The translations under genes were made by a program, and so were the position numbers. Shown piece after piece: positions 627 to 46,429 of a stretch of DNA of 64,000 nt. The stretch covers positions 744,001-808,000 of the forward strand of contig CBFDEM010000051.1 of the NCBI GenBank assembly GCA_965603825.1, read 5' to 3'. Source of the DNA: Blepharisma stoltei ATCC 30299 (taxonomy: Eukaryota; Protista; Ciliophora). The stretch's first letter is position 1. Each line of letters opens with the position of its first letter. The notes under the pieces were generated by a model that was not told the origin of the DNA, searched no databases, and worked only from the letters and a program-made list of their open reading frames with translations.

Positions 627-3600
627 TTAAACTTGTAGATTCACATCTTGGAAATCTGCATTATCGCTTCTCTTGTTGTTAATTACATAAATTGCTGTTC
701 TGTGAGTATCATTTGGAAAATCTTCATCTGATGCATTGCTTTTATTGTTATTATTATTTTTTTCTTCGACCACATACAAAAATAATTTTTTCATGTCCAT
801 ATTTAGTATGCTCTCTTGCTCTGAATCAGCAGGCAATGCTGACATTGGGTCATCATTCGCAATGATTGAAAAATATTTTTCGCCTTGTTTAACTTTGACG
901 TGATTTAGCTCAGATTTTTCAAAAATTTCGTCACTGAACCCATCCATTACTTTCCGACTAAATCTTCGTTTTAAGCATGGAATTAAATCAGTTAAGATTT
1001 GAAAACCAGCCCAAAATATTTTTTTAAGCCAGTAATAAAGGAAATATATATTTACAGCACAGATTAAAATAAAAAAAGCAGTTTTTGAAAATGAATCTAA
1101 TGACCCTGTCAAATAGTAAAGTCCACAATATATTGTAACAGCCGCTACTAAAATTGACCGAATTTCCATTTTATTCAAAACATCACCATCATAAGGCTGA
1201 ACTACACTTTGGTAGTAAAGACAAAGTAAAAGCAGTATCATGACAGTTAATGCTTGGATGCTGGTATTGACATTCGCTAAAAATACAGAGCAGCATACAA
1301 TAAGGATTTTTCTATATAAAATAATAAATTCCCAATAATAAGATTTTGCTTTATATCCGTTGAAAAGAAACCCAAACTGAAGTCTGACACTAATTGAGTC
1401 TAATTTTCTTTTATTTCTTCATAGAAAATATAGAGAAACAGTCGGAATACCGATTCCTCATATTATCATAGAAGGGACTGCAACTGCTAGGGAATAAAAT
1501 ACATGTCCCCTATCCCAGCATCGAATGTCTAAATCTTGCACAAGCCAGTACTCTCCTTCGTCAATTTGTCTACAGGAAAACACTGCAAACATAGACTTTA
1601 CTAAATTTGGATGGAAAAGAAACAGCAAAATTACGATTGTAGAAATTAAATCATTTTTAAATGAATTCAAAGTCTTTCTGTAAATTGCTACAGATCCTCA
1701 AAATAGTATTGAAATCAATCCTATAATTGCTGGAATTATGCTCATAATAATAAGTTTATTGAAATAAACTTGGTCATTACCTTGTCCTGTGTCTAAAAAG
1801 CAGTCAAAAGAAAAAACCTGTTCACTTACTGATCCTGTATCATTCTGTATGGAAAATAGTTGGGTCACACTAGACGGCCATTGCAAGTCAAAAGTAGTCA
1901 CAAGCATCACAATTTGTAAATAATTCACAAAAATCTTTATATATATTGATTGCACTGACTTCGGCTTATAAGCAGAATTCCTAGTCGTTTTTACCATTAT
2001 TCCACAAATAAAAATCACAGCAAGCATTATCCCAATTACTTTAAAAGCATTAGAAACTGCATTTGGGCATTTCCCGCAAGTATTTGTGCTGGTTCTCGAA
2101 TAGCCATTTTCGCATGCCTGGCACAAATTTCCTGTATATCCTTCATGGCAAAGTCCAGTAAAAGATAGATTTGGAGGCTGTGGAGAGCCTAAACAAGCTA
2201 AAGATTTTGGACAGGCAAGAAAATTCTCAGACATATTGCTCGACCTTCAATACCCCTTTTGCGGAACAATAGTATAGTTTCCATAACAAGTCGCTGAATG
2301 TGAAGGACAGGGAATACATTGAGTGTTTGAAGGGTTTAAGCTATAATATCCAATTCCACAAACTTCGCAGTTAACACCTACAGTGGCTTCTCCTATTATG
2401 CATAGGCGAAGAGTAACATCAATAGTTACTGAAGGAATAAATGTAACATTTGTTGCAATTTTTGACTGTTTCGTTGTATCTATACCTGTAGAAGTTGTTT
2501 TTATGGAAATCGTTGTTCCTGGCTTAGCAGAAACTATGAAATTATCAAAATAATATATCCCTTTTATTGCAGTTGTTTTTGTTAACCCAGATAAGGTCGT
2601 TGAGGTTGAATCTTCAGGAAAAAGTTGTGCAGTGCTTGAGCTATCTGTTGCTACAATGTTTCCATAATAATCTACCAATGCTAGTGTAATGCTTTGAGTC
2701 ATTTCTTGACCGGAAGCAATGCCAGAAATAGAGGTCGCTGTTGGGATGTCATCTAGTCTTCTACTATATTCAACTAGATTCCCATTTTTATCTATAGCCA
2801 TCAATTTTATTGCAAAAGAAGAAATTTCAGGTGCATAAGAAGCTTCATTATCATGAAATGAATTCCCATAAGCTATAGGAAACACATCTATTCAGTTTAT
2901 GCCTCCTCCATTATATTTAGCATAATTTTCTATAAAGCTGTTATAGGTAATATTAAATACACAAGTCGTAAAATCTGAGCAAGCTAAATTTATTCCACCT
3001 CCATTTCCAGTAGTAGGGGTAGTTCCCACAATTTCGCTAGTCGTATTTGCGATATTTCCTACAAATTCAGAAGAAGATACATTTAAACTGATATCGTTTG
3101 TGTATATTCCACCTCCTAATGATGCTGAATTGTTTCAAAATGATGATTCTGCTATAATATAAGGGTTTTCTATTTCTGTGTCGCTTGATGTCGATAAATA
3201 GATGGCACCACCAGTATCTGCTGTATTTTCTTGGAAATAGCAGTTATTTAAATAGACTGATATGCAAGAAATGCAAGTTAATGAGCCTCCATTGGTGCCA
3301 ATCCCATTATAAAATTTTGAGTCTTTTATATACACAGAATTCATTTTAGATCCATAAATAGCGCCTACCTTGTAATTTTTCATAACCGTGCTCTCAATAA
3401 TCAGATCACTTTCATAGCCGATTATCACTCCCCCTACATCCTTGCTATATGAGTTATAAAATGCGCTATTATTTATGAGCAAAGTGCTGCTTGAATAAGA
3501 CAGAATTACTCCACCTCCTCCATTTTTGGCGCTATTTCTATTAAAGATCCCATTATAAATATTTACTGTGCTAGAAATAGAAAAAATAGACCCAGCTGAG

Positions 3601-6600
3601 CTTGCACTTGATCCATCTATAAAAGTTGTGTTAAAAATACTTGCTATGCTTTGAGCAGTCGCATATATAAAGCTTCCTTGGTCTCCATTTTGACTTGAAA
3701 AGGCAGAGTTAGCTATTGTAGCCTGTGAAAGTGTTAAAAGGATTCCAGGGGTAATATATGATGCTATATTTTGGGTTATAGTAGATGATTCAATGCTTAT
3801 AGAAGAGTCAAGAAGAGCAATACTAGCTTCATTTGTGGAATTATTATAAGAAATTGTAGAGTTCAAAATGATAGAAATTGGAGTAGTTGACCCTAGCATA
3901 TATATAGCAGATCCTTTATCAGCGCATTTATTTCCTTTAATATTAGATTTTGTGATGTTAAAAAACGATTTCTGTTCACTGAAAATAGCCCCACCTGAGC
4001 CTTTTGCTGTATTTCCTATAAATGTGCAGCCTAAACAATAAAATTTAGAACCTGATCCTGCAGAAACAGCTCCTCCATCTGAAGATACTTGATTATAAGA
4101 AAAAATCGTATTTTCGCATACAGCAAGTGAGGCCTCAAGCATTTTTACTCCTCCTGATGGGCTTCCAACGTTATAAGTTAGTTCGGAGTTTGTATCTTCC
4201 CAATGGTCATTATCTAATGTTATAGGTGTTGCTGCGTTATTTGTAAATTTGCAAGAGTCTGTAATAAGATGAGAATAAACATCAGAATTTGTCATATAAA
4301 TAACTGCAAGACCACTATTTTGGATAAAATCAGCTGATTTTATTGTAAGTCTCGAATAGTAGCTACTTGACTCAGCTGCAATTTCTGAATGCAAAGATGA
4401 GCCAAGTCTTCCTATATTGGAAGTAAATTCGCAATCTGAAATAAGAAAAATTCCACTTAAAAAATAAAGTGCAATGGCTCCTGATGTTGTTGAATTATTT
4501 TGTATAAAGCTAGAAGAAACAATGGATGAGTTGCTATTTTGATCAAGATTTACTGTGCTATCTATATAAATAGCAGCTCCATAACTGCCATAATTTTGAG
4601 TGAATTTTGAATCTTTTATAGCAAAAGTTGCAATATTAGTGACAACTCCAGTGTTTTCTACATAAATTGCTCCACCTTGTGATATTAATGCAATATTCGA
4701 TATAAAACTGCATGAATCTATTGAAATTTCCATAATGCCAGCAGTTATCTGCATAACATACAACGCTCCACCTTTTGCTTTAGCATAATTATTTGTAAAC
4801 GAACTATTTGATATAAAAAGTGATTTCCCAGAAAACAAAATTCCTCCTCCATCATTCGCGTTATTTCAACTAAAAGTTGATTTTTGAATTTTTAATATTA
4901 AAGCGCTGCCTTTTGCATAAATAGTCCCATATCCTTGATCTGCATTGTTTATGTTTACATTTGCGGTAGAATCTATTATATCAGTTTGATTGCCTCCATT
5001 TATATACAAAACAGTCGGATACTCTGCAGATTTACCTAAATTGTTATCAAAAATGACATGATTGAAAGCAGTTATATTTGAATTTGTCAGAAATATATAA
5101 GGAGTTGAAGATGATGCGCAATTTTTTTTGATTTCTGAGTTTTCAATTGTAAATTTTATCAGTGAGTTCATAGACGCTAAAGAAGAAATATCTAAGGAAA
5201 TTGAGGATGATATTAGATTTTTTAAATAAATATTAGTATCTATTTTCCATACAGAAATGACAATGCTGTTAACTGTATTATTTGAAGTTCCATTTTCAGT
5301 CACATTAATAGCATTTAAGTTCAAGTTTACAAGTTTTGTAAAATCCCACATTCCAGAGCCTCCTGAATTATTGTTTATCAATTTTATAGTATCCCAGCTA
5401 AAAGTCCTATATCTTTCATAAGCCTTAACTTTATTACCATTAGATTTTGTTACAGTAGAAGTTTGGCCAAAAATATATTGGTTTAAAATAACGGAGTTAT
5501 AAATATACACTAACGCCCCTTTTTCTGCGCCGTTGCATTCCATTGTTACATTATTTCAATAAATATTCTGCAGCTCAGTTTGGTATTGAGCTGCAAAAAT
5601 TCCATAGTAAAACCCATAATTATATGAAAATATTGTATCTTCAATAACTATATGGTCAATTAAATAGTCAATAACTTGATTCTGAGAGTTTAAAGTCGAT
5701 TTTAGATCAAGATTGGAAGAACTTAAATAAATCAAAGCAGAGTATACCAAATTATAAGAAAAAGTGCAGGATTCTATTTTTAGAGTCCTGAAAATTTCTA
5801 AATAAATTAAAGAATCATCATCAGCATTTGATGGAGAATAAACAGCATTATTTTCAAAAATCACCCTACCAAAAGAAATATCTTGAGCTCTAGCTGCCCT
5901 GAAAAATCCTTTTAGTGTTAACGATGAAGAATACTCAAAGCCGTTGTTAAGCCTTGTAACTTTCCCTCCACTATAAGAAAAATTCCCACAACCATAAGTA
6001 TATCCAGAGTTTTGCAAGCAATCTTGAAATACAACTACTGCAGATCCTGAGCTCGGATTTGTCCTTATATTATCAAAATCAACATTATAAAGCTTGACAG
6101 TCCCTCCGTTGCTAAAAATAATTGAATTTTCTTCCATTCTTCAGTTATTAAAAGCAACATTGTATAAGAGTAAAGTAGTTCCACTAACAGCTTCAATTAG
6201 ATTTCATTTATGGTATTTTTGACACAGACTTGAGCCAGTAAAGTTAGTTATTGTGTTTCCTCTGTCATCTTTATAGCTTCCATCATATTGCTGAGTTATA
6301 AATGGACAATATGAGCAATAGCCGTCTAAGCAGCCGTTATGCCCATGAGCCCATTCATTTCCATCAAAAATGATATTACTTATAATTATCGTATCAGTAT
6401 TTTGTGTAGTAATGGTCAGGATATTTCAGTCAGTTTTTGGCTTAAAATATACCTTACTGCTATTTTCAGAAATTATTGATAAGCTTTTTCTGCGAGTTTT
6501 AGAATTATATGGTTTTGAGCTATCCGGCGCCACAACTGACATAATATTTGTTTTATTCAGCTGTGTCAAATAATGAACTCCATCATTAAGCAGTATAACA

Positions 6601-8042
6601 ACTGAATATTTGCTGTTTATAGCTGTCAAAGCAAGAGATAATGACTCGAATGGATTTTCTCTGGTACCATCTCCACCGGCTTGATCATTCGTTGTGAGAG
6701 ATGTCACATAATAATATGTCGGACTTACCATTGTAGAGCTATCATCATTAGGCAAGCATAGAGGATAAGAGCCTGCTATTGATTTAGCTGTATATCCACA
6801 AGGACATGCCTTTAAACAATACCCATAAAATTGATATGAATTCATAGTGTCGCACATATAGCACTGTCCATCGTCCGGACCATAGCAGGATTTGCAATTT
6901 CTATCATGACAACGCGAAGTTTTTTCTGGTAGGCAATTGAGCCAAGAATAAGCACAGGATTTGGTATCACAATTTTGAACGCAAGTATTTGGGTAGCTTA
7001 AAAGTATTCCTGTATTACAGTTTTGGCCTGCGCATTCATTGAGTTTTTGAACAGTTGATAAATCGTTATTGACAAGCTGTAAATGCATATAAAACAGTAT
7101 TAAATTTGTATTTTTGCAGTGCTTAGCTGTATCTGTGCTATATTGATCATAATAGCAATCCGCAGTCATACAATTTTCATTGCATTGACCATAGATCTTA
7201 TGATTACAACCTGTCGCACATTGGCAATCATCCCCATCAAAATCACAGCTTGAGACTCAGCACGAATCTTGGCAAACTCCATCATTTATATCTGTATAAA
7301 AGCATCCTGCATTACATTCTCCACACTTATAAGAATCATACTGGCAAGCTTCATTATTGCATTCTTTATCACATTTATTGTTCTCCAGCATACTTTTTGT
7401 GCATCCAGGAGCACAATCACAGTCTGTTCCATCATAACCACAGTCAGCGAAATAGCAAGCTGAGTTGCAAACTCCATCATTAATCATAAATGAGTAACAG
7501 CCATCAGCACAGGTATTGTTATCACAGTCTCCGAAGTCAAAATTACAGTTAGCATTATTGCAAACATCATCACATTTTCCATCACCTAAAAGAAAAGATG
7601 TACAATTTGTACTGCATTCTTGGCAGTGACTTTCACCGTAATAACAACTAGCTGTGTTACATGATGAATAACAAGCAGTTCCAAGCATTTCTTCGTAGCC
7701 TGTATATAAATTACAAGAATCAGCACAATACCCACAGTCTCCTAAATCTCACCCACATTTAGCATTATTACAAGCAGTGTCACATTTACCATCTCCTAAT
7801 AAATCAGGACTACAGTCATTATAATAGACACAATCGAAATAACAGTCAGATTTAGAAAAATCATAAGGCTCTGTAGATAATTCTGTGTCAAAATTGCAAT
7901 ATTTGGTCATACAATTCGTGTCACAATAGTTATCTCCTTTCTATGTGAAAATTACATAAGAATCTGGACATCAGTTATTATTGCAGGATATACTTAAGGA
8001 ATAAGCAAGTGGTAAAAAAGTAAACGGAATCAGTGGGATCAT
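627..8042 (-). CDS. Giant LNR / beta-helix / multi-TM surface protein, copy A (~2466 aa; one intron 7941-7955)
   Basis: ATG at 8042 gives MIPLIPFTFLPLAYS (signal-peptide-like). The track ORFs starting at 7688, 7169, 6137, 5543, 4838, 2885, 2234, 1670 and 1241 are all in this frame, broken at TGA. Contains GDGxCDxxCNxxxCxxDxGDC repeats, GGA(I/L)/FxxN repeats and a C-terminal multi-TM domain. TAA at 629-627. Confidence 0.9.
7941..7955 (-). other. 15-nt spliceosomal intron (GTAATTTTCACATAG)
   Basis: GT..AG, 15 nt, A at position 10. Removal deletes an in-frame TAG and restores the LNR motif CPDSY|KGDNYCD. Same position in copies C-F. Confidence 0.92.
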
Positions 8043-8828: not shown

Positions 8829-11800
8829 TTATTTATTTGGCATTCTAGTTTTTAAACTTGCAGATCTAGAAGGTGGACAATCTGCATCCTCATTTGTGCG
8901 ATCAAAATCGTTTATCACTGTCTTATAGATTTCCCCTGGATAATATTCCTCTACACTGATATCATTAGCTCCCTTTGTGGATTCTAATTTATTTTCTACG
9001 ACACGCAAAAATAGTTTTCTCATATCCATATTTAGCATGCTTTCTAACTCTACATCAGCAGGTAATGCTGACATTGGGTCTTCGTTCGCAATGATAGAAA
9101 AATATTTTTCGCCTTGTTTAACTTTGACATGATTTAGCTCAGATTTTTCAAAAATTTCGTCACTGAACCCATCCATGACTTTACGGCTAAATCTTTTTCG
9201 TAAGCAAGGAATTAAATCAGATAAGATTTGAAAGCCAGCTCCAAACATTTTTTTAAGCCAATAATAGAGGAAATAAATATTTACAGCACAGATTAAAATA
9301 AAGAAAACAGTTTTTGATACAGAATCTAAAGAGCCAGTCAAATAGTAAAGTCCACAATAAATTGTAACAGCCGCTACTAAAATTGACCGAATTTCCATTT
9401 CATTTAAAACATTTCCATCATAAGGCTGCACCAAATTTTGGAAGTAAAGACAAAGTAAAAGCAGCATCATGACAGTTAATGCTTGGATGCTTGTATTGAC
9501 ATTTGCTAAAAATACAGAGCAGCATACAATAAGGATTTTTCTATATAAAATAGCAAATTCCCAGTAATAAGATTTTGCTTTATATCCATTAAAAAGAAAC
9601 CCAAACTGAAGCCTGACACTAATTGAGTCTAATTTTCTTTTATTTCTTCATAGACAATATAAAGAAACAGTCGGAATACCGATTCCTCATACTATAATAG
9701 AAGGGACTGCAACAGCAAGGGAATAAAATACATGTCTATTATCCCAGCATCGAATATCTAAATCTTGCACAAGTCAGTACTCTCCTGCGTCAATTTCTCT
9801 ACATGAAAACACTGCAAACATAGACTTTACTAAATTTGGGTGGAAAAGAAATAGCAAAATCACAATGGTAGAAATTAAATCATTTTTAAATGATTTTAAA
9901 GTCTTTTTATAAATTGCTACAGATCCTCAGAATATAATTGATACTAATGCTATAATTGTAGGAATTATGCTCATAATAATAAGTTTATTGAAATAAACTT
10001 GGTCATTACCTTGGCCTGTATCTAAAAAGCAGTCAAAAGAAAAAACCTGTTCACTTACTGATCCTGTGTCATTTTGGATAGAAAAGAGTTGGGTCACACT
10101 GGATGGCCATTGCAAATCGAAAGTAGTCACAAGCATCACAATTTGTAAATAATTCACAAAAATCTTTATATATATTGACTGCACTGACTTCGGTTTATAA
10201 GCAGAATTCCTAGTCGTTTTTACCATTATTCCACATATAAGAACTACAGCAAGCATTATTCCAATTACTTTAAAAGCATTAGAAACTGCACTTGGGCATT
10301 TCCCGCAAGTATTTGTGCTGGTTCTCGAATAGCCATTTTCGCATCCCTGACACAAATTTCCTGTATATCCTTCATGGCAAAGCCCTGTAAAAGATAAATT
10401 AGGAGGCTGTGGAGAGCCTAAGCAAGCTGAAGATTTTGGACAGGCAAGAAAATTCTCAGACATATTACTCGACCTTCAATACCCCTTTTGAGGAACAATT
10501 GTATAATTTCCATAACAAGTCGCTGAATGTGCAGGACAAGCTAAGCACTGAGTGTAAGTAGGGTTTAAGCTATAATACCCAGCCCCGCAAACGTCACAAT
10601 TAACCCCTACAGTGGCTTCTCCTATTATGCATAGGCGAAGAGTTACATCAATAGTTACTGAAGGAATAAATGAGACATTTGTAGACATTTTAGACGCTTT
10701 TGTAGTGTCTATGCCAGTAGACGTTGTTTTTATAGAAACACTTGTCCCTGGTTTCGCTGAAACTACAAAACTGTCGAAATAATATATACCTTTAACAGCA
10801 GTTGTTTTAGTCGTCCCAGATAAGGTTGTAGAGGCTGAATCTTCAGGGAAAAGTTGTGCAGTACTTGAGCTATCTGTTGCTACAATGTTTCCATAATAAT
10901 CCACTAGTGCCAAAGTAATGCTTTTTGTAGTAGTTTGGCCAGATGCAATTCCAGAAATTGAGGTCGCTGTCGGAATATCATCTAGTCTTCTATTGTATTC
11001 AACTAGATTCCCACTTTTATCTACAGCCATCAATTTTATTGCAAAAGAAGAAATTTCAGGTGCATAAGAAGCTTTATTATCTTTAAATGTATTCCCATAA
11101 GCTATAGGAAACACATCTATTCAGTTTATACCTCCTCCATTATATTTAGCATAATTTTCTGTAAAGCTGTTATAGGTAATATTAAATACACAAGTCGTAA
11201 AATCTGAGCAAGCTAAATTTATTCCACCTCCATTTCCAGTAGTCGGTGTAGTTCCCACAATTTCGCTAGTCGTATTTGCGATATTTCCTACAAATGTTGA
11301 AGAGGATACATTTAAACTGATATTGTTTGTGTATATTCCACCTCCTAATGATGCTGAATTATTCCAAAATGATGATTGTTTTATGATATAAGGATTTCCT
11401 ATTTCTGTGTCACTTGAAGTAGATAAATAAATGGCTCCACCAGTATCTGCAGTGTTTTCTTGGAAATAGCAGTTATATAAATAGACTGATATGCAAGAAA
11501 TGCAAGTTAATGAGCCTCCATTGGTGCCAGCCCCATTATAAAATTTTGAATTTTTTATAGTAACTGAATTCATTTTAGATCCATAAATAGCGCCTACCTT
11601 GTAATTTTTCATAATCGTGCTTTCAACAGTCAGATCACTTTCATAGCCGATTATTACTCCTCCTACATCCTTACTATATGAGTTATAAAACGCGCTATTA
11701 TATATCACTAAAGTGCTGCTTGAATAAGACAGAATAACCCCACCCCCTCCATTTTTGGCACTATTTGTATTAAAAGTCCCATTATAAATATTCACGGTAC

Positions 11801-13400
11801 TTGAAATCGAAAAAATAGACCCTGCTGAGCTTGTACTTGTTCCACCTGTAAAAGTTGTGTTAGAAACAGTAGCTGTGCTTTGAGTAGTCGCATATATAAA
11901 GCTTCCTTGGTCTCCATTTTGACTTGAAAAGGCAGAATTAGATATTGTGGCCTGTGAAAGTGTTAGAAGGATTCCAGGGGTAATATATGATGCTATATTT
12001 TGGGTTATAGTAGATGATTCAATTTTTATAGAAGAGTCAAGAAGAGCAATAGTAGCTTCATTTGTGGAATTATTATAAGTAATATTAGAGTTCAAAATGG
12101 TAGAAATTGGAGTAGTTGACCCTAGCATATATATAGCAGATCCTTTATCAGCACATTTATTTCCTTTAATATAAGATTTTGTGATGTTAAAAAACGATTT
12201 CTGCTCACTGAAAATAGCTCCGCCTGAGCCTTTTGCTGTATTTCCTATAAATGTGCAGCCTAAACAATAAAATTTAGAACCTGATCCTGCAGAAACAGCT
12301 CCTCCATCTGAAGACACTTGATTATAAGAAAAAATCGTATTTTTACAAACAGCAAGCGAGGCATCAAGCATTTTTACTCCTCCTGATGGGCTTCCAACGT
12401 TATAGGTTAGTTCGGAGTTTGTATCTTCCCAATGGTCATAATCCAGTGTTATAGGTGTTGCTGCGTTATTTGTAAATTTGCAAGAGTCAGTAATAAGGTA
12501 AGAATAAACATCAGAATTTGTCATATAAATAACTGCAAGGCCACTATTTAGGGTAAAATCACCTGATTCTATTGTAAGTCTTGAATAGTAGTTACTTGGC
12601 TCAGCTGTTATTTCTAGATGCAAAGATGAGCCAAGTCTTCCTATATTTGAAGTAAACTTGCAATCTGAAATAAGAAATATTCCACTAAAAAAATAGAGTG
12701 CAATGGCTCCTGATGTTGTTGAATTATTTTTTATAAAACTAGAAGAAACAATAGATGAGTTGCCATTTTGATCAAGATTCACTGTGCTATCTATATAAAT
12801 AGCAGCTCCATAACTGCCATAATTTTGAGTGAATATTGCATTGCTTAATGCAAAACTGATTGTGTTATATAAAATCCCCGTGTTTTCTATGTAAATGGCT
12901 CCACCTGGAGATATTAGTGCGCAATTTAAAGTAAAATTGCAGGAATCTATTGAAACAGTCATACTTGCAGCAGCTGACTGCTGAATATATAATGCCCCAC
13001 CTTTTGTATTCGCTGTATTATTGATAAATGAGCTATCATTTATAGAAATAGATATGCCAGAAAACAAGATTGCTCCAGCATTATTCACATTATTATTAGT
13101 AAAAACAGTTCTCGCGATGCCCAATGTTAAAGTGCTACCTTTAGCATAAACCGTCCCATACGCTTGGCCTGCATTATTTATGTTTCCTTTTACTGTGGAG
13201 TCTGATATATCAGTTTGATTGCCTCCATTTATATACAAAGCAGTGGGATTATCTGTCGATATGCCTATATTGGTATCAAAAATTACATTATCAAAAACTG
13301 TTATATTTGAATTTGTTAGTAATAAATAAGGTGTCGATGCTGATGCGATATTATTTTCAATTTTTGAATTTTCAATTGTAAGTTTTATCATTTGGTTCAT
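8829..13400 (-). CDS. Copy B, 5'-truncated (open 1523-aa frame lacking signal peptide and LNR repeats); possibly a pseudogene
   Basis: Very similar to copy C from the beta-helix to the C-terminus. Homology stops abruptly at ~13484-13487, with an in-frame TAA at 13490-13488. First ATG at 13400. No TAA/TAG seen in the stretches read before the stop at 8831-8829. Confidence 0.75.
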
Positions 13401-13561
13401 AGATGCCAGGGAAGAAAAATCTAAAGAGGCTGGAGACGGAATTAAATTTTTTAAATAAATATTATTGTTTGCTTTTCATGCACTAAATTAAAAAATAGCT
13501 CCTAGAATTCTCTGACTTCTTATTTAAAAATTTTTATAATGAATTGATTTAATAAAAATAA

Positions 13562-27700: not shown

Positions 27701-29172
27701 TAATGGACTCCATCGTCTAGTAATACGACAACCGAATATTTAGTATTTATTACAGTCAATGCAAGGGCCAAAGACTCAAAAGGATTTTCATAAGTTCCAT
27801 TACCTCCAGCTTCATCATCCGTATTAAGCGACGTCACATAATAATAAGTTGGATTTTCAGACGACGACTCATCATCAGAAGGCAAACACAGAGGATAGGT
27901 TCCTGCAATTAGCTTAGCTGAATATCCACAAGGACAAGCCTTTAAGCAATACCCATAAAACTGATAATAAGAATCTTTACACGTATAGCACTGCCCATCA
28001 TTTTCTCCATAGCAATATTTACAATTTTTATCGCTGCATTGATTTTCTATTTCAGGCTCACAATTAAGCCAAGAATAAGCACATTGGTTAGTGTCACAAT
28101 TTTTTTGGCAACTATTCTGGCTATTTAAAAGAATTTCTGTATTGCAATTTAGTTCTGCGCAGCTGCTTATGCTTTGGACAGTTGATAAAGAGTAACTAAC
28201 CAGCTGCAAATGCATATAGAATAGCATTAAAGTTGTATTTTTGCATTGTTTAGCTGTATCTGAGCTAAATTGATCATAATAGCAATCTGCTGTCATGCAG
28301 TTTTCATTGCATTGGCCATACATGGTATAATTACAGCCCGTGGCGCATTGACAATCATCTCCATCATAGCCACAGCTAGCTACTCAGCACGCATCTTGGC
28401 AAATACCATCATTTATATTTTTATTGAAGCAGCCACTATTACAATCTCCACAATAATAGTTATCATATAAGCAAGCAGCATTACTACACTCTGCATCACA
28501 TTGATAATTATTTAGCATCTCTGCCGAACATCCAGGAGCGCAGTCACAGTCTGTTCTGTCATAATTGCATTCTTCAACATAGCAAAATTCATTGCAGACT
28601 CCATCATTTATCATTCACGAGTAACAGCCATCTGCACAAGTGCTATTATCACAGTCCCCAAAATCAAAATTACATTCAGCATTATTACAATCTTCGTTAC
28701 AAATTCCATCACCTAAAATTGAATATATACAATTTTCACTGCATTCTTGACAGTAACTTTCACCGTGATAGCAACTAGTAGTATTACATGATGAGTAGCA
28801 GGCACTTCCGAGCATATCTTGATAGCCTGAATTATTTTTACAATTATTATTACAATACCCACAGTCTCCTAAATCTCAGCCGCATTCAGCATAATTGCAA
28901 GCATTATCACAAATCCCGTTGCCTAATAAGTTAAGGTCACAGCCATTATAATAAACGCAATCAAAAAAGCAGTCAGAATTAGAAAAATTAAATGCTTGTA
29001 AAGACCCTGCGGCGTCATAATTGCAATATTCGGTCATGCAATTTATGTCACAATAGCTGTCTCCTTTCTAAATGATAGTTACATAAGAATCTGGGCACCA
29101 ATTCTTATTGCAAGTTATGAGCGAGCCGCTTGTAAAAGGAAGAAAATAAAACGCAGTAAAAAGAAGCAGCAT
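21742..29172 (-). CDS. Giant LNR / beta-helix / multi-TM surface protein, copy D (~2471 aa; intron 29068-29082)
   Basis: ATG at 29172 (MLLLFTAFYFLPFTSG). Fragments are in one frame. The gaps read by hand (26461-26700, 27301-27670) contain only TGA, e.g. GM(TGA)DFTK versus GMWDFTK in A/C. Confidence 0.9.
29068..29082 (-). other. 15-nt intron (GTAACTATCATTTAG)
   Basis: GT..AG, 15 nt, homologous position, in-frame TAG. Confidence 0.92.
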
Positions 29173-33300: not shown

Positions 33301-36300
33301 CGAAATAGAATAAATAGCCCCTGCTGAGTTCGAGCTTACCCCATTTGTAAACGTGGTGTTATAAATATCAGCTGTGCTTTGTGTAGCTGCATATATAAAG
33401 CTGCCTTCCTCTCCACTCTGGCTAGAACACTCAGAGTTTGCTATAGTTGCCTCTGATAGAGTCAAAAGGACTCCAGGAGTAATAAAAGATGCAATATTTT
33501 GAGTTATAGTTGATGATTCAATGTATATAGAAGAATCAAGGAGAGCAATGGTAGCTTCATTTGTCGAATTATTATAAGAAATTGTGGAATCTAAAATTAA
33601 AGAAGCAGGAGTAGTTGACCCTAACATGTAAATTGCTGATCCTTTATTGCTGCACTTATTTTCTTTTATATAAGATTTGGTGATATTAAAAAATGAATTT
33701 TGCTCAACGAAAATTGCGCCGCCTGAAATCTTCGCTGTATTCCTTATAAATGTACAAGCCATACAGTAAAACTTAGAGCCTGATCCTGAAGAAACTGCAC
33801 CTCCACTTTTAATTGCTTCATTATTAGAAAAAATGGTATTTTCACATTTTATAAGCGAAAAATCGTTAAATCTGGCTCCTCCTGAGAATTTTCCTATATT
33901 ATTTGTAATCACAGAGTTTTTATCCTCCCAATAATCATAGTCTAGCTCTATTGGTGTTGCAGCGTTATGAGAAAATATGCAGTTATTAGTAATAATATGT
34001 GAATACATATCAGAGTTTGCCGTATAAATTACTGCTTGACCTGAATTTTCAGTAAAATTAGTCGATTCTATTGTTAGTGTTGAGTACCAGTCCTTATACT
34101 CAGAATCAATTTCTACATGTAGAGATGCACCCAGTCTTCCTATATTTGAAGAAAATTCACAATCTGAAATCAGAAAAAAACCATCAAAAAAATATAATGC
34201 AACAGCTCCAGAATCGCTTGAATTGTTTTCAACAAATTTTGTAGAAGCGATCCATGAGTTACTATTTCGATCAAGCATAACTGAGTTATCTATATAAATT
34301 GCAGCTCCATAAGTAGCACAATTTTGAGAAAAATTTGAATCCTTTATTGAAAAAGTAGCCACCTCAGTCAAAAAACCACTATTTTCCATATAAATGGCTC
34401 CGCCTGAAAATATTCCTACAAAATTATTGAAAAAATTGCATGAATCTATTGAGACTGACATCAATCCACTTCCTGTTTGCTCAATATATATCGCCCCTCC
34501 TTTTAAAGGCGACGAATTTCAGCTAAAATCATCATTTTCTAGCAAAAGAGATTTTCCAGAAAACAAAAGTCCTCCTCCTTTACTGCCAATGTTCCACTGG
34601 AAATTTGTGTCTTTTATTTGCATGACTAATATATTTCCCTTGGCATAAATCGTCCCATAGCCTTCATTTGCCATATTCAAACTTGTATATACGGTTGAGC
34701 CTATAATATCAGTTTGATTACCTCCATTTATATACAAAATAGTTGGATAATCAGCTGAGTTGCCTATATTGCGTTCAAAAATCACATCATTTAAAAGTGT
34801 AATATTTGTGTTATTTATCCATAAGAAAGGTGTTGAAAAAGTTGCGAAATTATTAATAATTTTTGAATTTTCAATAGTCAGGTTTATCAATGTATTCATA
34901 AACGCTAAAGATGAAAATTCTATAGATACCGGAGATGTAATTAGGTTTTTTAAATAAATATTGGGATTTGCTTTCCATGCTGAAAATACTAAGCTGTTTA
35001 CAGTATTGCTTATAACTCCATTCGAAGTAATATTAACGTTGCTTAAGTTCAAATTCACAAGTTTTGTAAAATCCCACATCCCTGAGCCTCCTGAGTTATT
35101 ATTGGCAAAATTTATTGCACCCCAATTAAAAGTCCTATATTTTTTATAAGCACGCACCTTATTGCCATTAGACGCTGTTACAATAGAAGTCTGACCAAAA
35201 ATATAATTATCAAGGATAACTGCATTTGATATATAGACTAATGCTCCTTTTTCAGCCCCATTATATTCAATAGTTACATTGCTTCAATAAATATTCTGCA
35301 GCTCAGTTTGGTATTGAGCTGCAAAAATTCCATAATAAAATCCATAATTATGAGAAAATATTGTGTCTTCAATATCCACATGTTCCATAAAATAATCTTC
35401 TAATTGATTCTGATGGTTTATTGTTGATTTCAGCTGTAGAGTTATAGGTTTTAAATAAATCAAAGCTGAGTACACCACATTATAAGAAAAAATGCAGGAA
35501 TAAATTGTGAGGCATCTAAAAGTTTCTAGATAAATCAAAGCATCGTCAGCTGCATTTAATGAAGAATAAACAGCATTATTTTCAAAGTTCACTTCTCCAA
35601 TAATCACATCTTGAGCTTTAGCAGCTCAGAAAAATCCTTTTAGTGTCAATGATGAAGAATATTCAAAACCATTATTCAGCCTCGTAACCTTTCCTCAATA
35701 ATACGCAAAGTCCCCACAGCCATAAGTAAATCCAGAAGCATCATCGCAGGTTTGAAATACAACTACAGCAGATCCAGAGCTAGGATTCGTCCTTATGTTA
35801 TCAAAATCAACGCCATAAAGTCAGACACCTCCTCCACTATTAAAAATCAAGGAATTTTCTTCCATTCTTCAATTTTTGAATATAACATTATTCAGATCTA
35901 ATACAGTCCCACTTTGTACCTCAAATAAATTTCAGTTATGGAATTTTTGACATTGGCTTGATTCTGTAAAATTAGTAATTGTGTTTCCTCTGTCATCCTT
36001 ATAGCTACCATCAAATTGTAGACTTACAGATGGGCAATATGAGCAATACTCATCCAAACAGCTATTACGCCCATGAACCCATTCATTTCCATCAAAAATG
36101 ACATTGCTTATACCTAAGTATTCAGTATTTAGGGTCGAAAAAGTCATTATATTTCAGTCAGGCTTTGGCTTAAGATATACAACAGTAGTGTCATTTTCAG
36201 TATTTATAAATAAGAATTTTCTCTGAACTTTAGAATTATAAGGTTTATGAGAGTCTGCTGAGGTAACTGACATGATATTTGTTTTATTCAACTCAGTTAA

Positions 36301-37782
36301 ATAATGGACTCCATCGTTAAGCAATATGACAACTGAATATTTAGTATTTATTACAGTCAATGCAAGCGCTAAAGACTCAAACGGATTTTCATAAGTTCCA
36401 TTTCCTCCAGCTTCATCATCCGTATTAAGCGACGTCACATAATAAAAAGTTGGATTCAAAGCCGTTGAGTTATCATCTTTATGGTCAGAAGGCAAACACA
36501 GAGGATAAGTGTCTGCAATTAATTTAGCTGAATATCCGCAAGGGCAAGCCTTTACACAATATCCATAAAACTGATAATAAGAATCTTTACACGTATAGCA
36601 CTGTCCATCATTTTCTCCATAACAATATTTGCAATTTTTATCACTGCATTGATATTTTATTTCAGGTTCACAATTAAGCCAAGAATAAGCACATTGGCTA
36701 GAGTCGCAGTTTTTTATACAACTATCCTGACTACTAAATAGCATTTCTGTATTGCAATTTAGTGATGCACAGTTGTCTATGCTTTGGAAAGTTGATAAAG
36801 AGTAACTAACCAGCTGCAAATGCATATAGAATAGCATTAAAGTTGTATTTTTGCATTGTTTAGATGGATCTGAGCTAAATTGGTCATAATAGCAATCTGC
36901 TATCATGCAGTTTTCATTGCATTGGCCATAAATGGTATGATTACAGCCTGTGGTACATTGGCAATCATGCCCATCATAGTCACAGCTAGCTACTCAGCAT
37001 GAAGCTTGGCAAACACCATTATTTATATCTTTATTAAAGCAGCCACTATTGCATTCCCCACAAAAATAATTATCGTATGCACAACTAATATCATCACATT
37101 CAGGATCACATTGAAAATTATTTAACATCTCTGCCGAACATCCAGGAGCACAGTCGCAGTCTGTTCCGTCATAATCGCACTCTTCAACATAGCAAAATGG
37201 ACTGCAGACTCCATCATTTATCATTCACCAGTAGCAGCCATCTGCGCATGTGCTATTTTCACAGTCCCCAAAATCAAAATTACAGTCAGCATTATTACAA
37301 ACCTTGTCGCAAATTCCGTTACCTAATAGAGAAGATGTACAGTTTATGCTGCATTCTTGACAATAACTTTCGCCGCTATAGCAACTATCAGTATTGCATG
37401 ATGAGTAGCAAGCATTTCCGAGCATATCTTGATAGCCTGAATTATTTTTACAAGAATTATTACAATATCCACAGTCTCCTAAATCTCAGCCGCATTCAGC
37501 ATAATTGCAAGTGATATCACAAATTCCGTTGCCTAATAAGCCAGGGTCACAGCCATTATAATAAACGCACTCAAAATAGCAGTCAGAATTTGAAAAATCA
37601 AATGCTTGCAAAGATCCTGAGGCGTCATAATTGCAATATTCAGTCATACAATTTGTATCGCAGTAGCTGTCACCTTTCTATATGATAATTACATAAGAAT
37701 CCGGGCATCAATTCTTGTTGCAAGTTATGAGTGAGCCACTTACAAAAGAAAGAAAATAAAACGCAGTAAAAACAATTAGCAT
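30337..37782 (-). CDS. Giant LNR / beta-helix / multi-TM surface protein, copy E (~2476 aa; intron 37678-37692)
   Basis: ATG at 37782 (MLIVFTAFYFLSFVSG). Fragments are in one frame. Closest to copy D. Confidence 0.9.
37678..37692 (-). other. 15-nt intron (GTAATTATCATATAG)
   Basis: GT..AG, 15 nt, homologous position, in-frame TAG. Confidence 0.92.
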
Positions 37783-39004: not shown

Positions 39005-42000
39005 TTAATTATTTAATGTCTTCAAATTTAGACTTGCAGATCTAGAAGGTGGAGGCGGATCTAATAGATCTTCACTTTGGTAGTTGCACCAAGTACAATG
39101 ATTTTCATACTTAGAATCATGATTTTCCTCTCTATTTTTGTTCTCCAATTTATTTTCCACAACTGATAAAAATACTTTTTTCATATCCATATTCATCATA
39201 TTTTCCAGCTCTTCATCAGCAGGTAAAGCTGACATTGGATTACTATTAGAAATAATTGAAAAATATTTTTCTCCTTGCTTTAATTTCACATGATTTATAT
39301 CAGAATTTTCAAAAATATCATCACTAAACCCATCCATCACTTTATGGCTAAATCTTCTTCTTAAGCATGGAATTAAATCAGTTAAGATTTGAAAACCAGC
39401 CCCAAACATTTTTTTAAGCCAATAATAAAGGAAATAAATATTGGCTCCACAGATTAAAATAAAAAAAACAGTTTTCGATACAGAATCCAAAGATCCAGTC
39501 AAATAATAAAGTCCACAATATATTGTAACAGCCGCTACCAAAATGGACCGGATTTCCATCTGGTTTAAAGCATTTCCATCATAAGGCTGCGCATCATTTT
39601 GGAAATAAAGGCACAGCAAAAGCAGTATCATTACAGTTAATGCTTGAATACTTGTCGAAATATTTGCCAAAAACACTGAGCAGCAAACAATAAGGATTTT
39701 TCTATATAAAATAACAAATTCCCAATAATAAGATTTTGCTTTATACCCATTAAAAAGAAACCCGAACTGAAGCCTGACACTAATTGAGTCTAATTTTCTT
39801 TTGTTTCTTCATAGAAAATATAAAGAAACAGTCGGAATTCCGATTCCTCAAACTATAATAGAAGGCACTGCAACTGTCAAAGAATAAAATACATGTTTAC
39901 TGTCCCAGCACCTTATATCTAAATCCTGTACAAGCCAATATTCCCCTTTTTCTATTTCTCTACACGAGAACACATAAAACATGGATTTCACTAAATTTGG
40001 GTGAAAAAGAAACAGTAAAATGACTATTGTAGAAATTAAATCATTTTTAAATGATTTTAGCGTCTTTTTATAAATCGCGACACAGCCCCAAATTAAGACT
40101 GAGATTAGTGCGATAATTATAGGAATAATAGCCATTATAATAAGTTTGTTGAAATATACTTGGTCATTTCCTTGGCCCGTGTCTAAAAAGCAGTCAAAAG
40201 AAAAAACTTGTTCGCTTACTGATCCTGTGTCGTTTTGAATAGAAAAAAGCTGATTTACGCTGGAGGGTCATTGTAAATCAAAAGTAGTCATTAGCATCAC
40301 AAGCTGCAAATAATTCACAAAAATTTTTATATATATAGATTGCACTGATTTCGGCTTATATGCAGAATTCCTGGTCGTTTTTACCATTATTCCACATATA
40401 AGAACTACAGCAAACATTATTCCTATCACTTTAAAAGCGTTAGAAACTGCATCTGGGCATTTTCCACAAGTATTTGTGCTGGTTCTTGAATAGCCTTCCT
40501 CGCAAGCCTGACATAAATTTCCTTTGTATCCTTCATGGCAAAGCCCAGTAAAAGAAAGATTAGGAGGCAATGGGGAGCCTAAACAAGCTGAAGATTTCGG
40601 ACAGGCAATAAAATTATCTGACATATTATTTGACCTCCAGTATCCCTTTTGCGGGACAATTGTATAGTTTCCATAACAAGTTGCTGAATGTGACGGGCAT
40701 GCTAAACATTGAGTATTTAAAGGGTCTAAGCTATAATACCCAGCCCCACAGACTTCACAGTCAACACCTACAGTGGCTTCTCCTACTACGCATAGTCGAA
40801 GAGAGACGACAACATTTACAGAAGGAATAAAAGTTGCATCAGTCGCTATTTTCGACTCTTTTGTGGTATCTATACCAGATGAGGTGATTTTTACTGAAAT
40901 GCTTGTTCCTGGTTCTGCTGAGACTATAAAACTGTCAAAGTAATAGAGCCCATTAGCAGCTGTTGTTTTAGTAGTTCCTGAGAGGGTAGTTGAGGTAGAG
41001 TTTTCAGGGAAAAGCTGGGCTGTGCTTGAGCTATCAGTTGCTACAATGTTTCCATAATAATCAACTAATGCTAGTGTAATACTTTTAGTAGTTTCTTGAC
41101 CAGATGCTATATTATCAATTGAAGTCGCAGTAGGGATCTCATCAAGCCTCCTCCCATAGTCAATTAAATCCCCATTATCATCAACCGCCATCAATTTTAT
41201 AGCAAATGAAGCAATATCTGGTGCATATTCAGCTTCATTACTACTAAAAGAGTTCCCATACGCGATTGGACAAATATCTTCCCAATTAAATCCTCCCCCG
41301 TTATATTTGGCATAATTTTTAACAAAACTGTTATAGGTGATATTAAATACACAAGTCGTAAAATCTGAGCAGGCTAAGTTTAAGCCCCCTCCATTTCCAG
41401 TCGACGGGGTGGTGCCGATTATATCGTCAGTCGTATTTGCGATATTTCCTACAAATACTGAAGAAGATACATTTAAGCTGACATCATTTGCATATATACC
41501 GCCTCCCAATGATGCTGAATTATTCCAAAATTCTGATTCTTTTATGATATAAGGACTGTCTATTTCTGTGTCGCTTGATGTTGATAAATAAATAGCCCCG
41601 CCTGTTTCCGCAGTGTTTCCTTGATAATAGCAGTTATATATTAAAACTGATTCACAAGAAACGCAGGTCAATGAGCCTCCATTGGTGCCAATCCCATTAT
41701 AAAATTTTGAGTCTTTTATATACACAGAATTCATTTTAGACCCATAAATAGCCCCTACCTTATAATTTTTCATGACTGTGTTATAGATATTTAAATCACT
41801 TTCGTAGCCAATTATAACCCCTCCTACATCTTTGCTGTAAGAATTATAAAATGCGCTATTGTTTATGAGCAAAGTGCTGCTTGAGTAAGACAATATTACC
41901 CCGCCTCCTCCACTTTTGGCACTATTTCTATTAAAAGTGCCATTATATATATTTACAGTACTGGAAATAGAAAAAATAGACCCTGCTGAGCTTGTGCTTA

Positions 42001-45000
42001 CCCCATCTTTAAAAGTTGTGTTATAAATATTCGCCACGCTCTGAGTGGTTGCGTATATAAAGCTGCCTTGATCTCCATTCTGGCTAGATAATTCAGAATT
42101 TGCTATAGTTGCCTCTGAAAGAGTTAAGAGAATTCCTGGGGTAATATAAGATGCAGTATTTTGAGTAATGATAGATGATTCAATGTATATAGAAGAGTCA
42201 AGCAGAGCAATTGTAGCTTCATTTGTGGAATTATTATAAGAAATCGTAGAGTCTTTAATTATAGAAACTGGACTCGTTGACCCTAGCATATAAATAGCAG
42301 ATCCTTTATCAACACATTGGTTTCCTTTAATTACAGAATTTGTAATATTAAAAAACGATTTTTGCTCATTGAAAATAGCCCCTCCAGATCCACTAGCTGC
42401 ATTCCCTATAAATGAGCAATTCATACAATAAAATTTAGACGCTGATCCAGAAGAAACTGCGCCACCATCTGTAGTTACTTCATTATAAGAAAAAACTGTG
42501 TTTTCACATGCTGCATATGAAATATCAAGAAGTTTGACTCCTCCAGAGTATTTTCCTGTGTTATTTGTAATTACAGAATTTGTGTCTTCCCAATGATCAT
42601 AGTCTAGCTCTATCGGTATTCCTTCATTCTGTGATAATGTGCAGCTACTTGTGAGTATTTTAGAATAAACGTCAGAATTCGTCAAATAAATAACTGCTTG
42701 GCCTGAATTTTTTGTAAAATCAGTTGAAGTTATATAAATTCTGGAATAGTAAGCACTTGGCTCAGTTTCTATTTCTGCGTGCAAAGATGCGCCAAGTCTT
42801 CCTATATTTGAGGTAAATTTGCAGTCTGAAATAAGGTAAATTCCAGTTATAAAGTACAGGGCAATGGCTCCTGAAGAAGTTGAATTATTTTTAATAAAAT
42901 TTGAAGCAGCTAGGTATGAGCCTCCATTTTGATCAAGATTTACTGAGCTGTCTATATAAATAGCAGCTCCATAACTTGCAGAATTTTGAGTGAAATTTGA
43001 ATTTTTTATTGCAAAAAGAATTATATTAGCAATAACTCCAGCATTTTCAGCATAAATTGCCCCTCCATAATATGATGCTGCAATATTTGATGTAAAACTG
43101 CAGGAATTTATCGAAACTTCCATAGTACCTGTTATTGTTTGTTCAATATATACTGCCCCTCCTTTTGAAGGACTTTCATTCCCTATAAAAACAGTCTCCG
43201 CTATCGAAAGGGATTTCCCAGAAAATAAAATCCCTCCTCCATTATAGGCGATATTTGCCCCATATTCTGTATCATTTATTTGCATTATTAATGCACTGCC
43301 TTTCGCATAAATCGTTCCATACCCTTGGTCAGCATTATTTAAATTACTTTTTATGCTTGAGCTTATAATAGCAGTTTGGTTGCCTCCATTTATATACAAA
43401 ATAGTTGGGTATTCTGATGAGGTCCCTGAATTTTGTTCAAAAATGATGTTATTTAGAACAGTTATATTTGAATTTGTGAATAATAGATAAGGGTTTGATG
43501 CAGATGCATAGTTTTTATTGATTTTTGAGTCTTCAATTGTAATATTTATCATTGAGGCTAATGATGCTAAAGAAGAAAAATCTAAAGAAGCTGGGGAGGA
43601 GATCAGGGCTTTTAGGTAAATGCTTGTATTTGATTTTCAAAAGCCAAGGACAAGACTGTTTACTGTATTGCTTGTAACTCCATTTGAGGCTATATTGATA
43701 CTTTTTAAATACAAATTTACAAGTTTTGTGAAATCTCACATTCCTAAGCCTCCTGAATTATTGTTGATAAAACTTATTGTATCCCAATAAAAAGTCCTAT
43801 ATTTTTCATAAGCTCGCACCTTACTTCCAGCAGATGTTGTGACAATAGAAGTCTGGCCAAAAATATACTGATTAAGGATAACTGCATTTGATATATAGAC
43901 TAATGCGCCTTTTTCTGCTCCATTAGACTCTATAGTTACATTATTTCAATAAATATTTTGCAGCTCAGTTTGGTACTGAGCTGCAAAAATACAGTATAAA
44001 AATCCATAATTATATGAAAATGATAAGTCTTGGAAAGTTATATGATAAATCAAATAATCAGTTACTTGGTTCTGGGAATTTAATGTTGACTTCAGCTCAA
44101 GATTGGTAGATTTTAAATAAATCAAGGCAGAGTAAACCAAATTATAAGAAAAAGTGCAGGATGCAATGCTAAGTGTTCTAAAAATTTCGAGGTAAATTAA
44201 AGAGTCGTCGTTTGAGCTTGAGGAAGAATAAACAGCGTTATTTTTAAAGCTCACGCCTTCAAAAGAGACATCTTGAGCTCTGGAAGCCCAAAAGAATCCT
44301 TTTAGCGTTATTGATGAAGAATATTCAAATCCATTATTCAGCCTTGTCACACTTCCTCCGCAATAAGTAAAATTCCCACACCCATAGGCATAGTCAGTGC
44401 TTGTAGAGCAGTCTTTAAATGCAATTACCGCCGATCCCGAGCTTGGGTTTGTTCTGATATTATCAAAATATACTTCATTAAGTGCAATAGTCCCTGCACT
44501 GTTATAAATTATTGAATTTTCTTCCATTCTTCAGTTATTAAATTCAACATTATATAGCTCTAAAGTAGTTCCGCTGGCAACCTCAATTAAATTTCAGTTA
44601 TGGAACTTCTGACATTGGCTTGATTCTGTAAAATTCGTTATCACATTTCCTCTGTCATCTTTATAGCTGCCATCAAACTGCTCAGTTACCGAAGGACAAT
44701 AAGAGCAATACCCGTCTAAACAGCTGTTCTGCCCATGCACCCATTCATTTCCGTCAAAAATGATATTATTAATAATGATTTTTTCAGTATTTTGTGTAGT
44801 AATAGTCAAAATACTTCAGTCAATTTTTGGTTTAAGGTATATAGTGCTATTATTTTCAGTAGTTATTGTTAAGCTTTTTCTCTGAGTTTGTGAATTATAA
44901 GGCTTCGAGGAGTCTGGTGAAATAATCGTCATAATATTTGTCTTATTCAATTGAGTTAAATAGTGGACTCCATCATCAAGTAATATAATAACTGAATATT

Positions 45001-46429
45001 TATTGTTTATTACAGTCAGCGCGAGTGCTAAAGACTCGAAAGGGTTTGCTAATGTCCCATCTCCTCCAGCTTGATCATCCGTAACAAGTGACGTCACATA
45101 ATAATAAGCTGGACTTATAGACGACGAGTCATCGTCAGAAGGCAAGCACAGAGAATAAGTATCTGCAATTGAATTAGCTGTATATCCACAAGGACAAGCC
45201 TTTAAACAGTACCCATAAAACTGATAATACGAATTTTGGCACGTATAACACTGTCCATCATTATCCCCATAACAAGTTTTACAATTTCTGTCACTACAAC
45301 GGTTCATTTTTTCAGGCTCACAATTAAGCCAGGAATAAGCACATGCAATGGAGTCACAATTTTGGGTACAGTCATTTGTATTCTTTAGAAGCATTTCTGT
45401 TTGGCAGTTTTGGGCTTCACATGTGCTGATTTTTTGAATTGTTTCTAAATCGTTATTAACAAGCTGTAAGTGCATGTAGAATAGCATTAGAGTTGTATTT
45501 TTGCAATGTTTAGTGGTGTCTGAGCTGAATTGGTCGTAATAGCAAGCTGCTGTCATGCAGCTTTCGCTGCATGAGCCATAGTTGGTATGGTTACAGCCTG
45601 AGGCACATTGGCAATCGTATCCATCATTATCACAATTTGATACTCAGCATGCATCTTGGCAAGTTCCATCATTTATATACTCATTAAAACACCCACTGTT
45701 GCAATCTCCACAAAGATAGTTATCATATAAGCATGCAGCATTATCACACGCTGAATCACATTGATCATTATTTAACAAATCTGCCGAGCACCCAGGTGCA
45801 CAGTCACAATCTGTTCCATCATAATCGCACTCTTCAACATAACAAAATTCATTGCAGACTCCATCATTTATCATTCACGAGTAGCAGCCATCTGCACAAG
45901 TACTGTTATCACAGTCCCCAAAATCAAAATTACAGTCAGCATTATTACAAGCCTCGTCACAAGTCCCATCACCTAATATGGAAGATGTACAGTTTGTGCT
46001 GCATTCTTGACAATAACTTTCGCCGTAATAGCAATCAGCGGTATTGCATGCTGAATAACAAGCGCTTCCTAGCATATCTTCATAGCCTGAATAAAAATTA
46101 CAAGAGCTATCACAATATCCACAGTCTCCTAAATCTCAGCCGCATTCAGCATTATTGCAAGCAGTGTCACAATTTCCGTCTCCTAATAGACTAGGAGTGC
46201 AGCCATTATAATATACGCAGTCAAAATAGCAGTCAGAGTTAGAAAAATCAAAATCTCCTGTAGAGTCTGAACTATCAAAATTGCAATATTCGGTCATGCA
46301 TTCAGTGTCACAATAGCTGTCGCCTTTCTATATGATAATTACATAAGAGTCTGGGCACCAATTCTTATTGCAAGTTATGCTTGAACAGGAGGCAAAGCTG
46401 AGAAAACAAAACGTAAAAAAATAAATCAT
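39005..46429 (-). CDS. Giant LNR / beta-helix / multi-TM surface protein, copy F (~2469 aa; intron 46328-46342)
   Basis: ATG at 46429 (MIYFFTFCFLSFASC). Fragments are in one frame. The 1094-aa track ORF reads through sites that are TGA in other copies (e.g. KGYWRS). Confidence 0.9.
46328..46342 (-). other. 15-nt intron (GTAATTATCATATAG), identical to the copy E intron
   Basis: GT..AG, 15 nt, homologous position, in-frame TAG. Confidence 0.92.

Follow-up and report, generated by a model that had tools for sequence, protein, structure and literature searches.

The window analysed here is a stretch of 64,000 nucleotides from the ciliate Blepharisma stoltei (C51:744001-808000), and its minus strand between positions 627 and 46429, when read with TGA as Trp, holds six head-to-tail genes (g1-g6, Table 1). 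Five are full copies of ~2,470 codons each and the sixth, g2, is a truncated duplicate. The order of domains is a signal-peptide-like start, nine LNRs, a CxxC module, a beta-helix, a linker, a two-module stalk, a nine-helix core and a tail. To our minds, the array is probably one cluster of a large B. stoltei family of surface receptors that belongs to the superfamily of cysteine repeat modular proteins (CRMPs).

With TGA read as Trp, the six long frames (exon 2 of the full copies and the open frame of g2) contain 81 in-frame TGA codons and not a single TAA or TAG over ~7.3 kb per full frame, and all six genes use TAA as stop codon. The other two frames of each gene carry ~150 TAA/TAG codons, and under the standard code the very same six frames fall apart into at least 37 small open reading frames. 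In alignments of the copies, Trp is by far the commonest partner of TGA, and 16 of 26 TGA columns show only TGA or TGG (Trp) in the other copies. Retranslation thus bore out the original prediction, made from the letters of this DNA, that TGA=Trp and one 15-nt intron yield six genes. Its further claim that the array is hidden by the genetic code did not hold: UGA=Trp and introns of mostly 15-16 bp are published for the 41 Mb somatic genome of B. stoltei (PMC9942806), and gene models for the array are public (P0001, P0121, P0277, P0288). The genetic code here is nothing new; the real gain over the public models is the 5' exon.

In the five full copies this upstream exon is 87-90 nt long; it codes for a hydrophobic beginning that resembles a signal peptide (in line with the signal peptide that had been proposed) and for the first half of LNR1, one example reading M-I-Y-F-F-T-F-C-F-L-S-F-A, then C-N-K-N-W-C-P-D-S-Y; in g1, an in-frame ATG farther upstream could lengthen exon 1 to 8075. 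The intron predicted between exons 1 and 2 measures 15 nt (GTAA..TAG). Its splicing is supported because exon 2 opens mid-LNR, with its first residues aligning to positions 15-34 of the Pfam LNR profile, and because signal peptide and LNR1 are contiguous in Stentor coeruleus SteCoe_29840. Once the 15 nt are removed, Cys and Gly-Asp are spaced just as in the following LNR of that protein. The public models, which are labelled uncharacterised proteins and lack exon 1, correspond to g2 (P0001, starting at a Met at 13391), to the g4 frame from Met11 (P0121), to g5 (P0277) and to g1 (P0288, beginning only at Met258). Since those for g1, g4 and g5 start at an internal Met and go without exon 1 and the 15-nt intron, their proteins appear to have no signal peptide. 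Moreover, P0277 takes out five codons (K-N-N-S-G) in LNR3 at ~37435-37449 as an extra 15-nt intron; the near-identical g4 model retains these five codons, and an error in one or the other model is likely at this point.

Table 1. Genes of the array, domains of g6 and the duplication junction (window coordinates)
Feature	Position	Strand	Remarks
g1	627..8042	-	exon 2 630-7940; TAA 627-629; intron 7941-7955; exon 1 7956-8042
g2	8829..13487	-	5'-truncated partial duplicate; open frame 8832-13487
g3	13562..21004	-	exon 2 13565-20902; intron 20903-20917; exon 1 20918-21004
g4	21742..29172	-	exon 2 21745-29067; intron 29068-29082; exon 1 29083-29172
g5	30337..37782	-	exon 2 30340-37677; intron 37678-37692; exon 1 37693-37782
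g6	39005..46429	-	exon 2 39008-46327; intron 46328-46342; exon 1 46343-46429
g6 LNR cap	45308..46327	-	nine LNR-like repeats, 15% Cys; PF00066
g6 CxxC Cys-rich module	45128..45307	-	pattern visible in sequence
g6 right-handed parallel beta-helix	41228..45127	-	~1,300 aa; GGA[ILV] and FxxN repeats
g6 Cys-free linker	40793..41227	-	~145 aa, beta-rich; from composition
g6 Cys-rich stalk	40448..40792	-	Ephrin-receptor-like module and DUF7630
g6 nine-helix membrane domain	39368..40447	-	WGIGIP, RLQFGFLFNGYK, YYWEF..LYRK and QPYD..LN..E signatures
g6 cytosolic tail	39008..39367	-	~120 aa
Duplication junction	13486..13487	-	3' end of g3 and ~78 nt of flank adjoin g2 coding sequence

The ectodomain begins with the LNR cap, in which motif counts distinguish seven canonical and two degenerate repeat cores, in agreement with the eight to nine LNR-like repeats first proposed. 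Pfam scans, which were run on exons and TGA-bounded pieces separately or on public protein ids, found PF00066 above cut-off in three pieces of g6 (32-43 bits, E 7e-11 to 1e-7) and in g4 (45.7 bits), and the Cys and Asp/Asn residues of the repeats are arranged as in LNRs that bind Ca2+. For the adjoining module, described before as CxxC 'furin-like', the CxxC pattern is present whereas the family is not confirmed: no Pfam family matched this module, the N-terminal third of the beta-helix or the cytosolic tail. The Pmp-type beta-helix had been suggested from GGA(I/L/V) and FxxN repeats, of which each copy has 5-7 and ~20, respectively, and it is upheld by Chlam_PMP (PF02415) scores of 24.4 and 31 bits (cut-off 20.6) and by an AlphaFold2 model of g4 residues 395-1594, all-beta with a regular three-strand repeat and a predicted local distance difference test score (pLDDT) of 90.1. 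Relatives also match Beta_helix (PF13229). When the model was submitted to Foldseek, all top rows were right-handed beta-helix proteins (Ag43, PL6 lyases, pertactin, Fap2), with no row at E<=1e-3. As for the beta-rich linker, an immunoglobulin-like fold is our guess.

As had been anticipated, a Cys-rich stalk comes next and is followed by a multi-pass domain and a tail of ~120 residues. The stalk matched DUF7630 (27.4 bits, cut-off 27) and, weakly, Ephrin_rec_like in the Pfam scans. AlphaFold2 folds the membrane domain of g2 into nine helices (pLDDT 93.4, predicted template modelling score 0.89) with a helical loop on the extracellular side and a beta-hairpin that holds two Cys. The predicted topology, which fits the positive-inside rule, places the N terminus outside and the C terminus inside, and polar or charged residues are conserved within the helices (K47, N51, Q54, E249, R255, K256, Q274, N301, E304). 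Foldseek searches of this domain against the PDB returned no row at E<=1e-3 and template modelling (TM) scores of at most 0.25, the best Z in a wide VIA-align search was 7.3 (unrelated helical proteins, within noise) and a profile search against PDB sequences gave no match. In ESM Atlas proteins from ciliates, haptophytes, green algae, cnidarians and sponges, this fold recurs (TM-score 0.8-0.9) behind Ephrin_rec_like, DUF7630, LRR, TIR or START modules, and a feature search of the atlas gave no named cluster besides Ephrin_rec_like, DUF7630 and PF06011. A profile search with the membrane domain gathered 29,825 representative clusters at E<=1e-3.

It is this combination of stalk and nine-helix core which links the array to the CRMPs. 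These are Cys-rich modular proteins with nine membrane helices, as in Toxoplasma and Plasmodium, and with homologues in Dictyostelium; their 'conserved core' consists of two EGF-like modules plus the membrane helices (PMC9670195, PMC9815656). Tetrahymena TtCRMP1/2 are needed for mucocyst discharge and Toxoplasma TgCRMPA/B for rhoptry secretion, knock-outs blocking discharge in both cases (PMC9670195, PMC9815656). We compared motifs, in a qualitative manner, with published apicomplexan, Chromera and Paramecium sequences from the supplement of PMC9815656 and found signatures of the array proteins in the same order in CRMPs: the Cys hairpin, WGIGIP, NR+xL, RLxYGFLxNG[YF], [YF]WE..RK and QPFD..L..LE. 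WGIGIP is an identical hexapeptide in both groups. Similarly, Paramecium XP_001426280 and Dictyostelium Q86I19, both assigned to the CRMPs by Singer et al. (PMC9815656), have cores that open with the same two Cys-rich modules, in collinear order with the stalk. In Q86I19, a signal peptide and PbH1 beta-helix repeats are present as well. So the array proteins combine a nine-helix core that has the conserved blocks with two EGF/Ephrin-receptor-like modules directly before the helices. Judged at motif level, the closest known relatives of the array proteins are the CRMPs, and the view that they do not represent a characterised family has to be revised, as stalk and nine-helix core match the CRMP conserved core (PMC9670195, PMC9815656).

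A second and far more distant relationship leads to the fungal Flc/Pkd2 domain (PF06011), the sole Pfam family to recur among relatives (6 of 14, and 10 of 56 at E<=0.1). In the C-terminal piece of g6 this profile scored 17 bits (E 0.003) against a cut-off of 28.5, and the whole membrane domain of g2 gave no PF06011 match. A clear relative, a short metagenomic family member of 693 residues (P0335), reaches 32.1 bits and hence passes the cut-off, and BLASTP aligned it to the membrane domain of g2 at 3e-41 with the whole domain covered. The PF06011 homology spans helices 5-9 (profile positions 233-404 of 426). We therefore read the resemblance to Flc/Pkd2, noted in the original prediction, as a remote but real homology of helices 5-9: it stands by way of P0335, while the array proteins, with 17 bits, are not members of this Pfam family. 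With the same nine-helix core and a weak LNR match, P0335 forms a bridge between CRMP-type cores and Flc/Pkd2 of fungi. The TRP_N ML-like domain (PF14558) was not matched in any Pfam scan. An analogy with canonical transient receptor potential (TRP)/polycystin channels or adhesion G-protein-coupled receptors (GPCRs) had also been drawn and is not supported: no TRP or PKD structure was among the Foldseek or VIA-align matches of the core, no GPCR fold match rose above noise, and Pfam gave no match to GPS/GAIN or seven-transmembrane families. A canonical TRP channel or adhesion GPCR was rejected on the Foldseek and VIA-align results for the core.

Protein identity between the copies ranges from 71 to 95%, and the closest pairs are neighbours (g2/g3, 95%; g4/g5, 88%). 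Synonymous divergence (dS) between copies is 0.18-0.97, and the ratio of non-synonymous (dN) to synonymous divergence (dN/dS) amounts to 0.14-0.28 overall, 0.05-0.15 in the membrane domain and 0.13-0.34 in the ectodomain. The six copies are paralogues under purifying selection, not stacked alleles; tandem and partial duplications enlarged the array, which purifying selection maintains. Stacked alleles and pseudogenes were considered and rejected on dS, on dN/dS and on frames free of TAA and TAG. Tails behave in their own way: the first ~70 residues are conserved, the last ~40 differ sharply between subgroups (g1 versus g3 and g6), and tail dN (tails at 630-990, 13565-13925 and 39008-39367) is 0.29-0.32 compared to 0.035-0.04 in the membrane domain.

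In keeping with the truncated copy implied earlier, g2 is devoid of a promoter region, a signal peptide, an LNR cap and the first ~895 codons, and the junction could be located (Table 1). From there, its coding sequence shows homology to g3 that starts at position 18219 and runs downward; the unit that was copied is ~4.73 kb long, and dN/dS between the two genes is 0.14. Neutral drift would predict 8-16 stops in the frame of g2, and ~8 even at one quarter of the observed dS; none was found and all 1,552 codons are intact. With a frame free of stops, g2 is therefore either still constrained or was converted very recently.

Searching the genome (41.46 Mb, 64 contigs) for the membrane domain revealed 69 near-complete loci plus fragments, 63 of them outside the array. 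They are mostly arranged in tandem arrays (C30, C36, C8, C39, C35, C28, C23 and other contigs), and at least ~60 of the 69 have an LNR match 4-8 kb upstream on the same strand; these were paired by hand, and the number is a lower bound because scores were computed for only 150 of the 485 candidate LNRs. Proteins of ~2,400 residues with an LNR cap also occur in Stentor coeruleus, as orthologues, and among 'Clim_evm' models. The LNR-capped form is a heterotrich-wide variant of a pan-eukaryotic family, and the idea that these are diversified, receptor-like proteins which have kin in further protists is supported. Literature searches on DUF7630, on Pmp-type proteins in ciliates and on LNRs in heterotrichs returned no description of this LNR-capped family. 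A more distant relative of the membrane domain (46% identity) lies on the same contig C51 at 841515-842549 (minus strand), ~33 kb past the end of the window.

How might such receptors operate? We envisage that the LNR-tipped beta-helix would project far from the membrane, where it may bind, or be pulled by, an outside partner such as prey, predator, mate, substrate or glycan. The stalk could then relay the signal to the nine-helix core which, by analogy with Tetrahymena CRMP1/2 and Toxoplasma CRMPA/B, would license the discharge of docked secretory organelles, in Blepharisma the pigment-granule extrusomes or mucocysts; extrusome discharge would be the likeliest output. Given its remote kinship with fungal Flc/Pkd2, the core itself may carry the signal as a flux of Ca2+, by analogy with Pkd2, and the many paralogues would widen the range of recognised stimuli. 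Carrying this further, a tentative scenario, possible though doubtful, is that CRMP-type cores in general are distant relatives of the Ca2+-permeable, stretch-activated Flc/Pkd2 domain and mediate a contact- or force-gated entry of Ca2+ that directly fires docked secretory organelles, heterotrichs having expanded the system to ~69 genes with LNR-tipped beta-helix 'antennae' tuned to various stimuli. The literature we searched held no joint mention of 'cysteine repeat modular' and 'transient receptor potential'.

Several points weigh against the CRMP reading. The link to the CRMPs is one of ordered motif identity, not an alignment statistic, and a literal search did not find the helix-2 motif N[YF]xQ at the right place in apicomplexan CRMPs, so that for the N-terminal half of the core (membrane helices 1-4) a match exists with the Paramecium-type sequence alone. 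Genomes encode only a few functional CRMPs, which work as A/B heterodimers, and a family of 69 genes may have another role than theirs. As to Ca2+ flux, the proteins of the window score below the Pfam cut-off for PF06011 and, with no solved structure resembling the core, channel activity is a guess.

It seems unlikely to us that the array encodes transporters or channels of the Flc/Pkd2 kind, permeable to Ca2+ or mechanosensitive, which have nothing to do with exocytosis and whose giant ectodomain would act as a tether or as a lever of force in responses to touch, osmotic change or contraction. Such channels would explain why PF06011 is the sole recurrent Pfam match and why P0335 passes its cut-off, they would go along with polar and charged residues conserved inside the helices, and there is a precedent in fission-yeast Pkd2, a PF06011-type protein with its N terminus outside and its C terminus inside, that passes Ca2+ on membrane stretch (PMC9727806). 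The homology is remote, however, and restricted to helices 5-9; a TRP_N/ML-like domain and a fold match to any solved channel are lacking, and the CRMP signatures are much closer. Less probable again is a main role as adhesins or as a variable coat of the cell surface, with attachment or self/non-self display brought about by the beta-helix and its LNR tip and with the membrane domain as only an anchor. Pmp-type beta-helices are bacterial adhesin passengers (Ag43, pertactin and Fap2 being among the top fold rows), the family is large and tandemly arrayed, and ectodomains diverge faster than the core, with a dN of 0.14-0.18 versus 0.035 for the pair g3/g6. Yet nine helices with a dN/dS of 0.05-0.15 and invariant buried polar residues far exceed what an anchor needs, and the ectodomain, too, is under purifying selection (0.13-0.34), no diversifying selection being seen at this resolution.

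For the beta-helix itself, the many PL6 lyases and glycoside hydrolases among the Foldseek rows would suit a membrane-tethered lyase or hydrolase acting on polysaccharides of food, mucus or cyst wall. We regard this as very improbable, given that no row reaches E<=1e-3, that identities are 8-11%, that no enzyme Pfam family was matched and that the sequence repeats are Pmp-type. Finally, the truncation of g2 is what one might expect if the array were an assembly artefact of stacked alleles or a set of dead genes, a notion to which we attach hardly any credence in view of dS values of 0.18-0.97, 7.3 kb without TAA or TAG, a dN/dS of 0.14-0.28, distinct flanks and tails, and 63 other loci elsewhere in the genome. 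This leaves surface receptors of the CRMP superfamily as the reading we favour.

If so, a free-living and easily cultured ciliate offers ~69 genes of the CRMP type whose ectodomains are very large and clearly folded, a family that occupies ~1% of the Blepharisma somatic genome. The gene set, combined with a high-confidence model of the core, provides comparative material for finding key core residues, and the bridge to Flc/Pkd2 suggests a concrete mechanism, namely Ca2+ permeation. In addition, public models of this family go without the signal-peptide exon and predictions of surface proteins for Blepharisma are therefore biased.

Elsewhere in the window, two tandem choline/ethanolamine kinase genes lie on the plus strand at 50073-51140 and 51726-52847 (PF01633, E 2e-22 and 7e-38). 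On the minus strand, 48487-49467 encodes a protein of 326 residues, probably of the centrosome or the basal body, in which Pfam matched a FOP N-terminal dimerisation domain (PF09398, E 2e-8).

When set against known systems, the array proteins share with chlamydial Pmp and other autotransporter adhesins the GGA[ILV]/FxxN beta-helix, with PF02415 above cut-off and the same fold class. Unlike Pmp, they are eukaryotic, anchored by nine alpha-helices and devoid of an autotransporter beta-barrel (no Pfam match to PF03797). With the Notch negative regulatory region they have in common significant LNR repeats of the Ca2+-type Cys and Asp/Asn pattern; in contrast to Notch, their nine LNRs form the outermost N-terminal end, over 1,500 residues away from the membrane, and there is no heterodimerisation domain. 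Hence, with the LNRs at the distal tip and that domain absent, a Notch-like cleavage shield is not indicated. Canonical TRP/polycystin channels differ in that the array core lacks a match to the six-helix voltage-sensor-like plus pore fold. The Flc/Pkd2 domain is similar in being multi-pass, with the N terminus outside, the C terminus inside and an extracellular N-terminal domain, and in the match over helices 5-9; it is dissimilar in that the array proteins have no TRP_N/ML-like domain and a wholly different ectodomain.

The CRMPs (Plasmodium CRMP1-4, Toxoplasma CRMPA/B, Tetrahymena CRMP1/2) differ from the array proteins in that the latter carry a nine-LNR N-terminal cap and a ~1,300-residue Pmp-type helix, have no Kringle or lectin modules and come as ~69 paralogues in tandem arrays rather than as 2-4 genes. 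Shared with the CRMPs are the signal peptide, the large modular Cys-rich ectodomain, the cytosolic tail and the two EGF/Ephrin-receptor-like modules directly before nine helices whose core signatures are ordered alike and partly identical. In Dictyostelium Q86I19 the likeness extends to the ectodomain, since parallel beta-helix repeats are carried by this protein as they are by those of the array.

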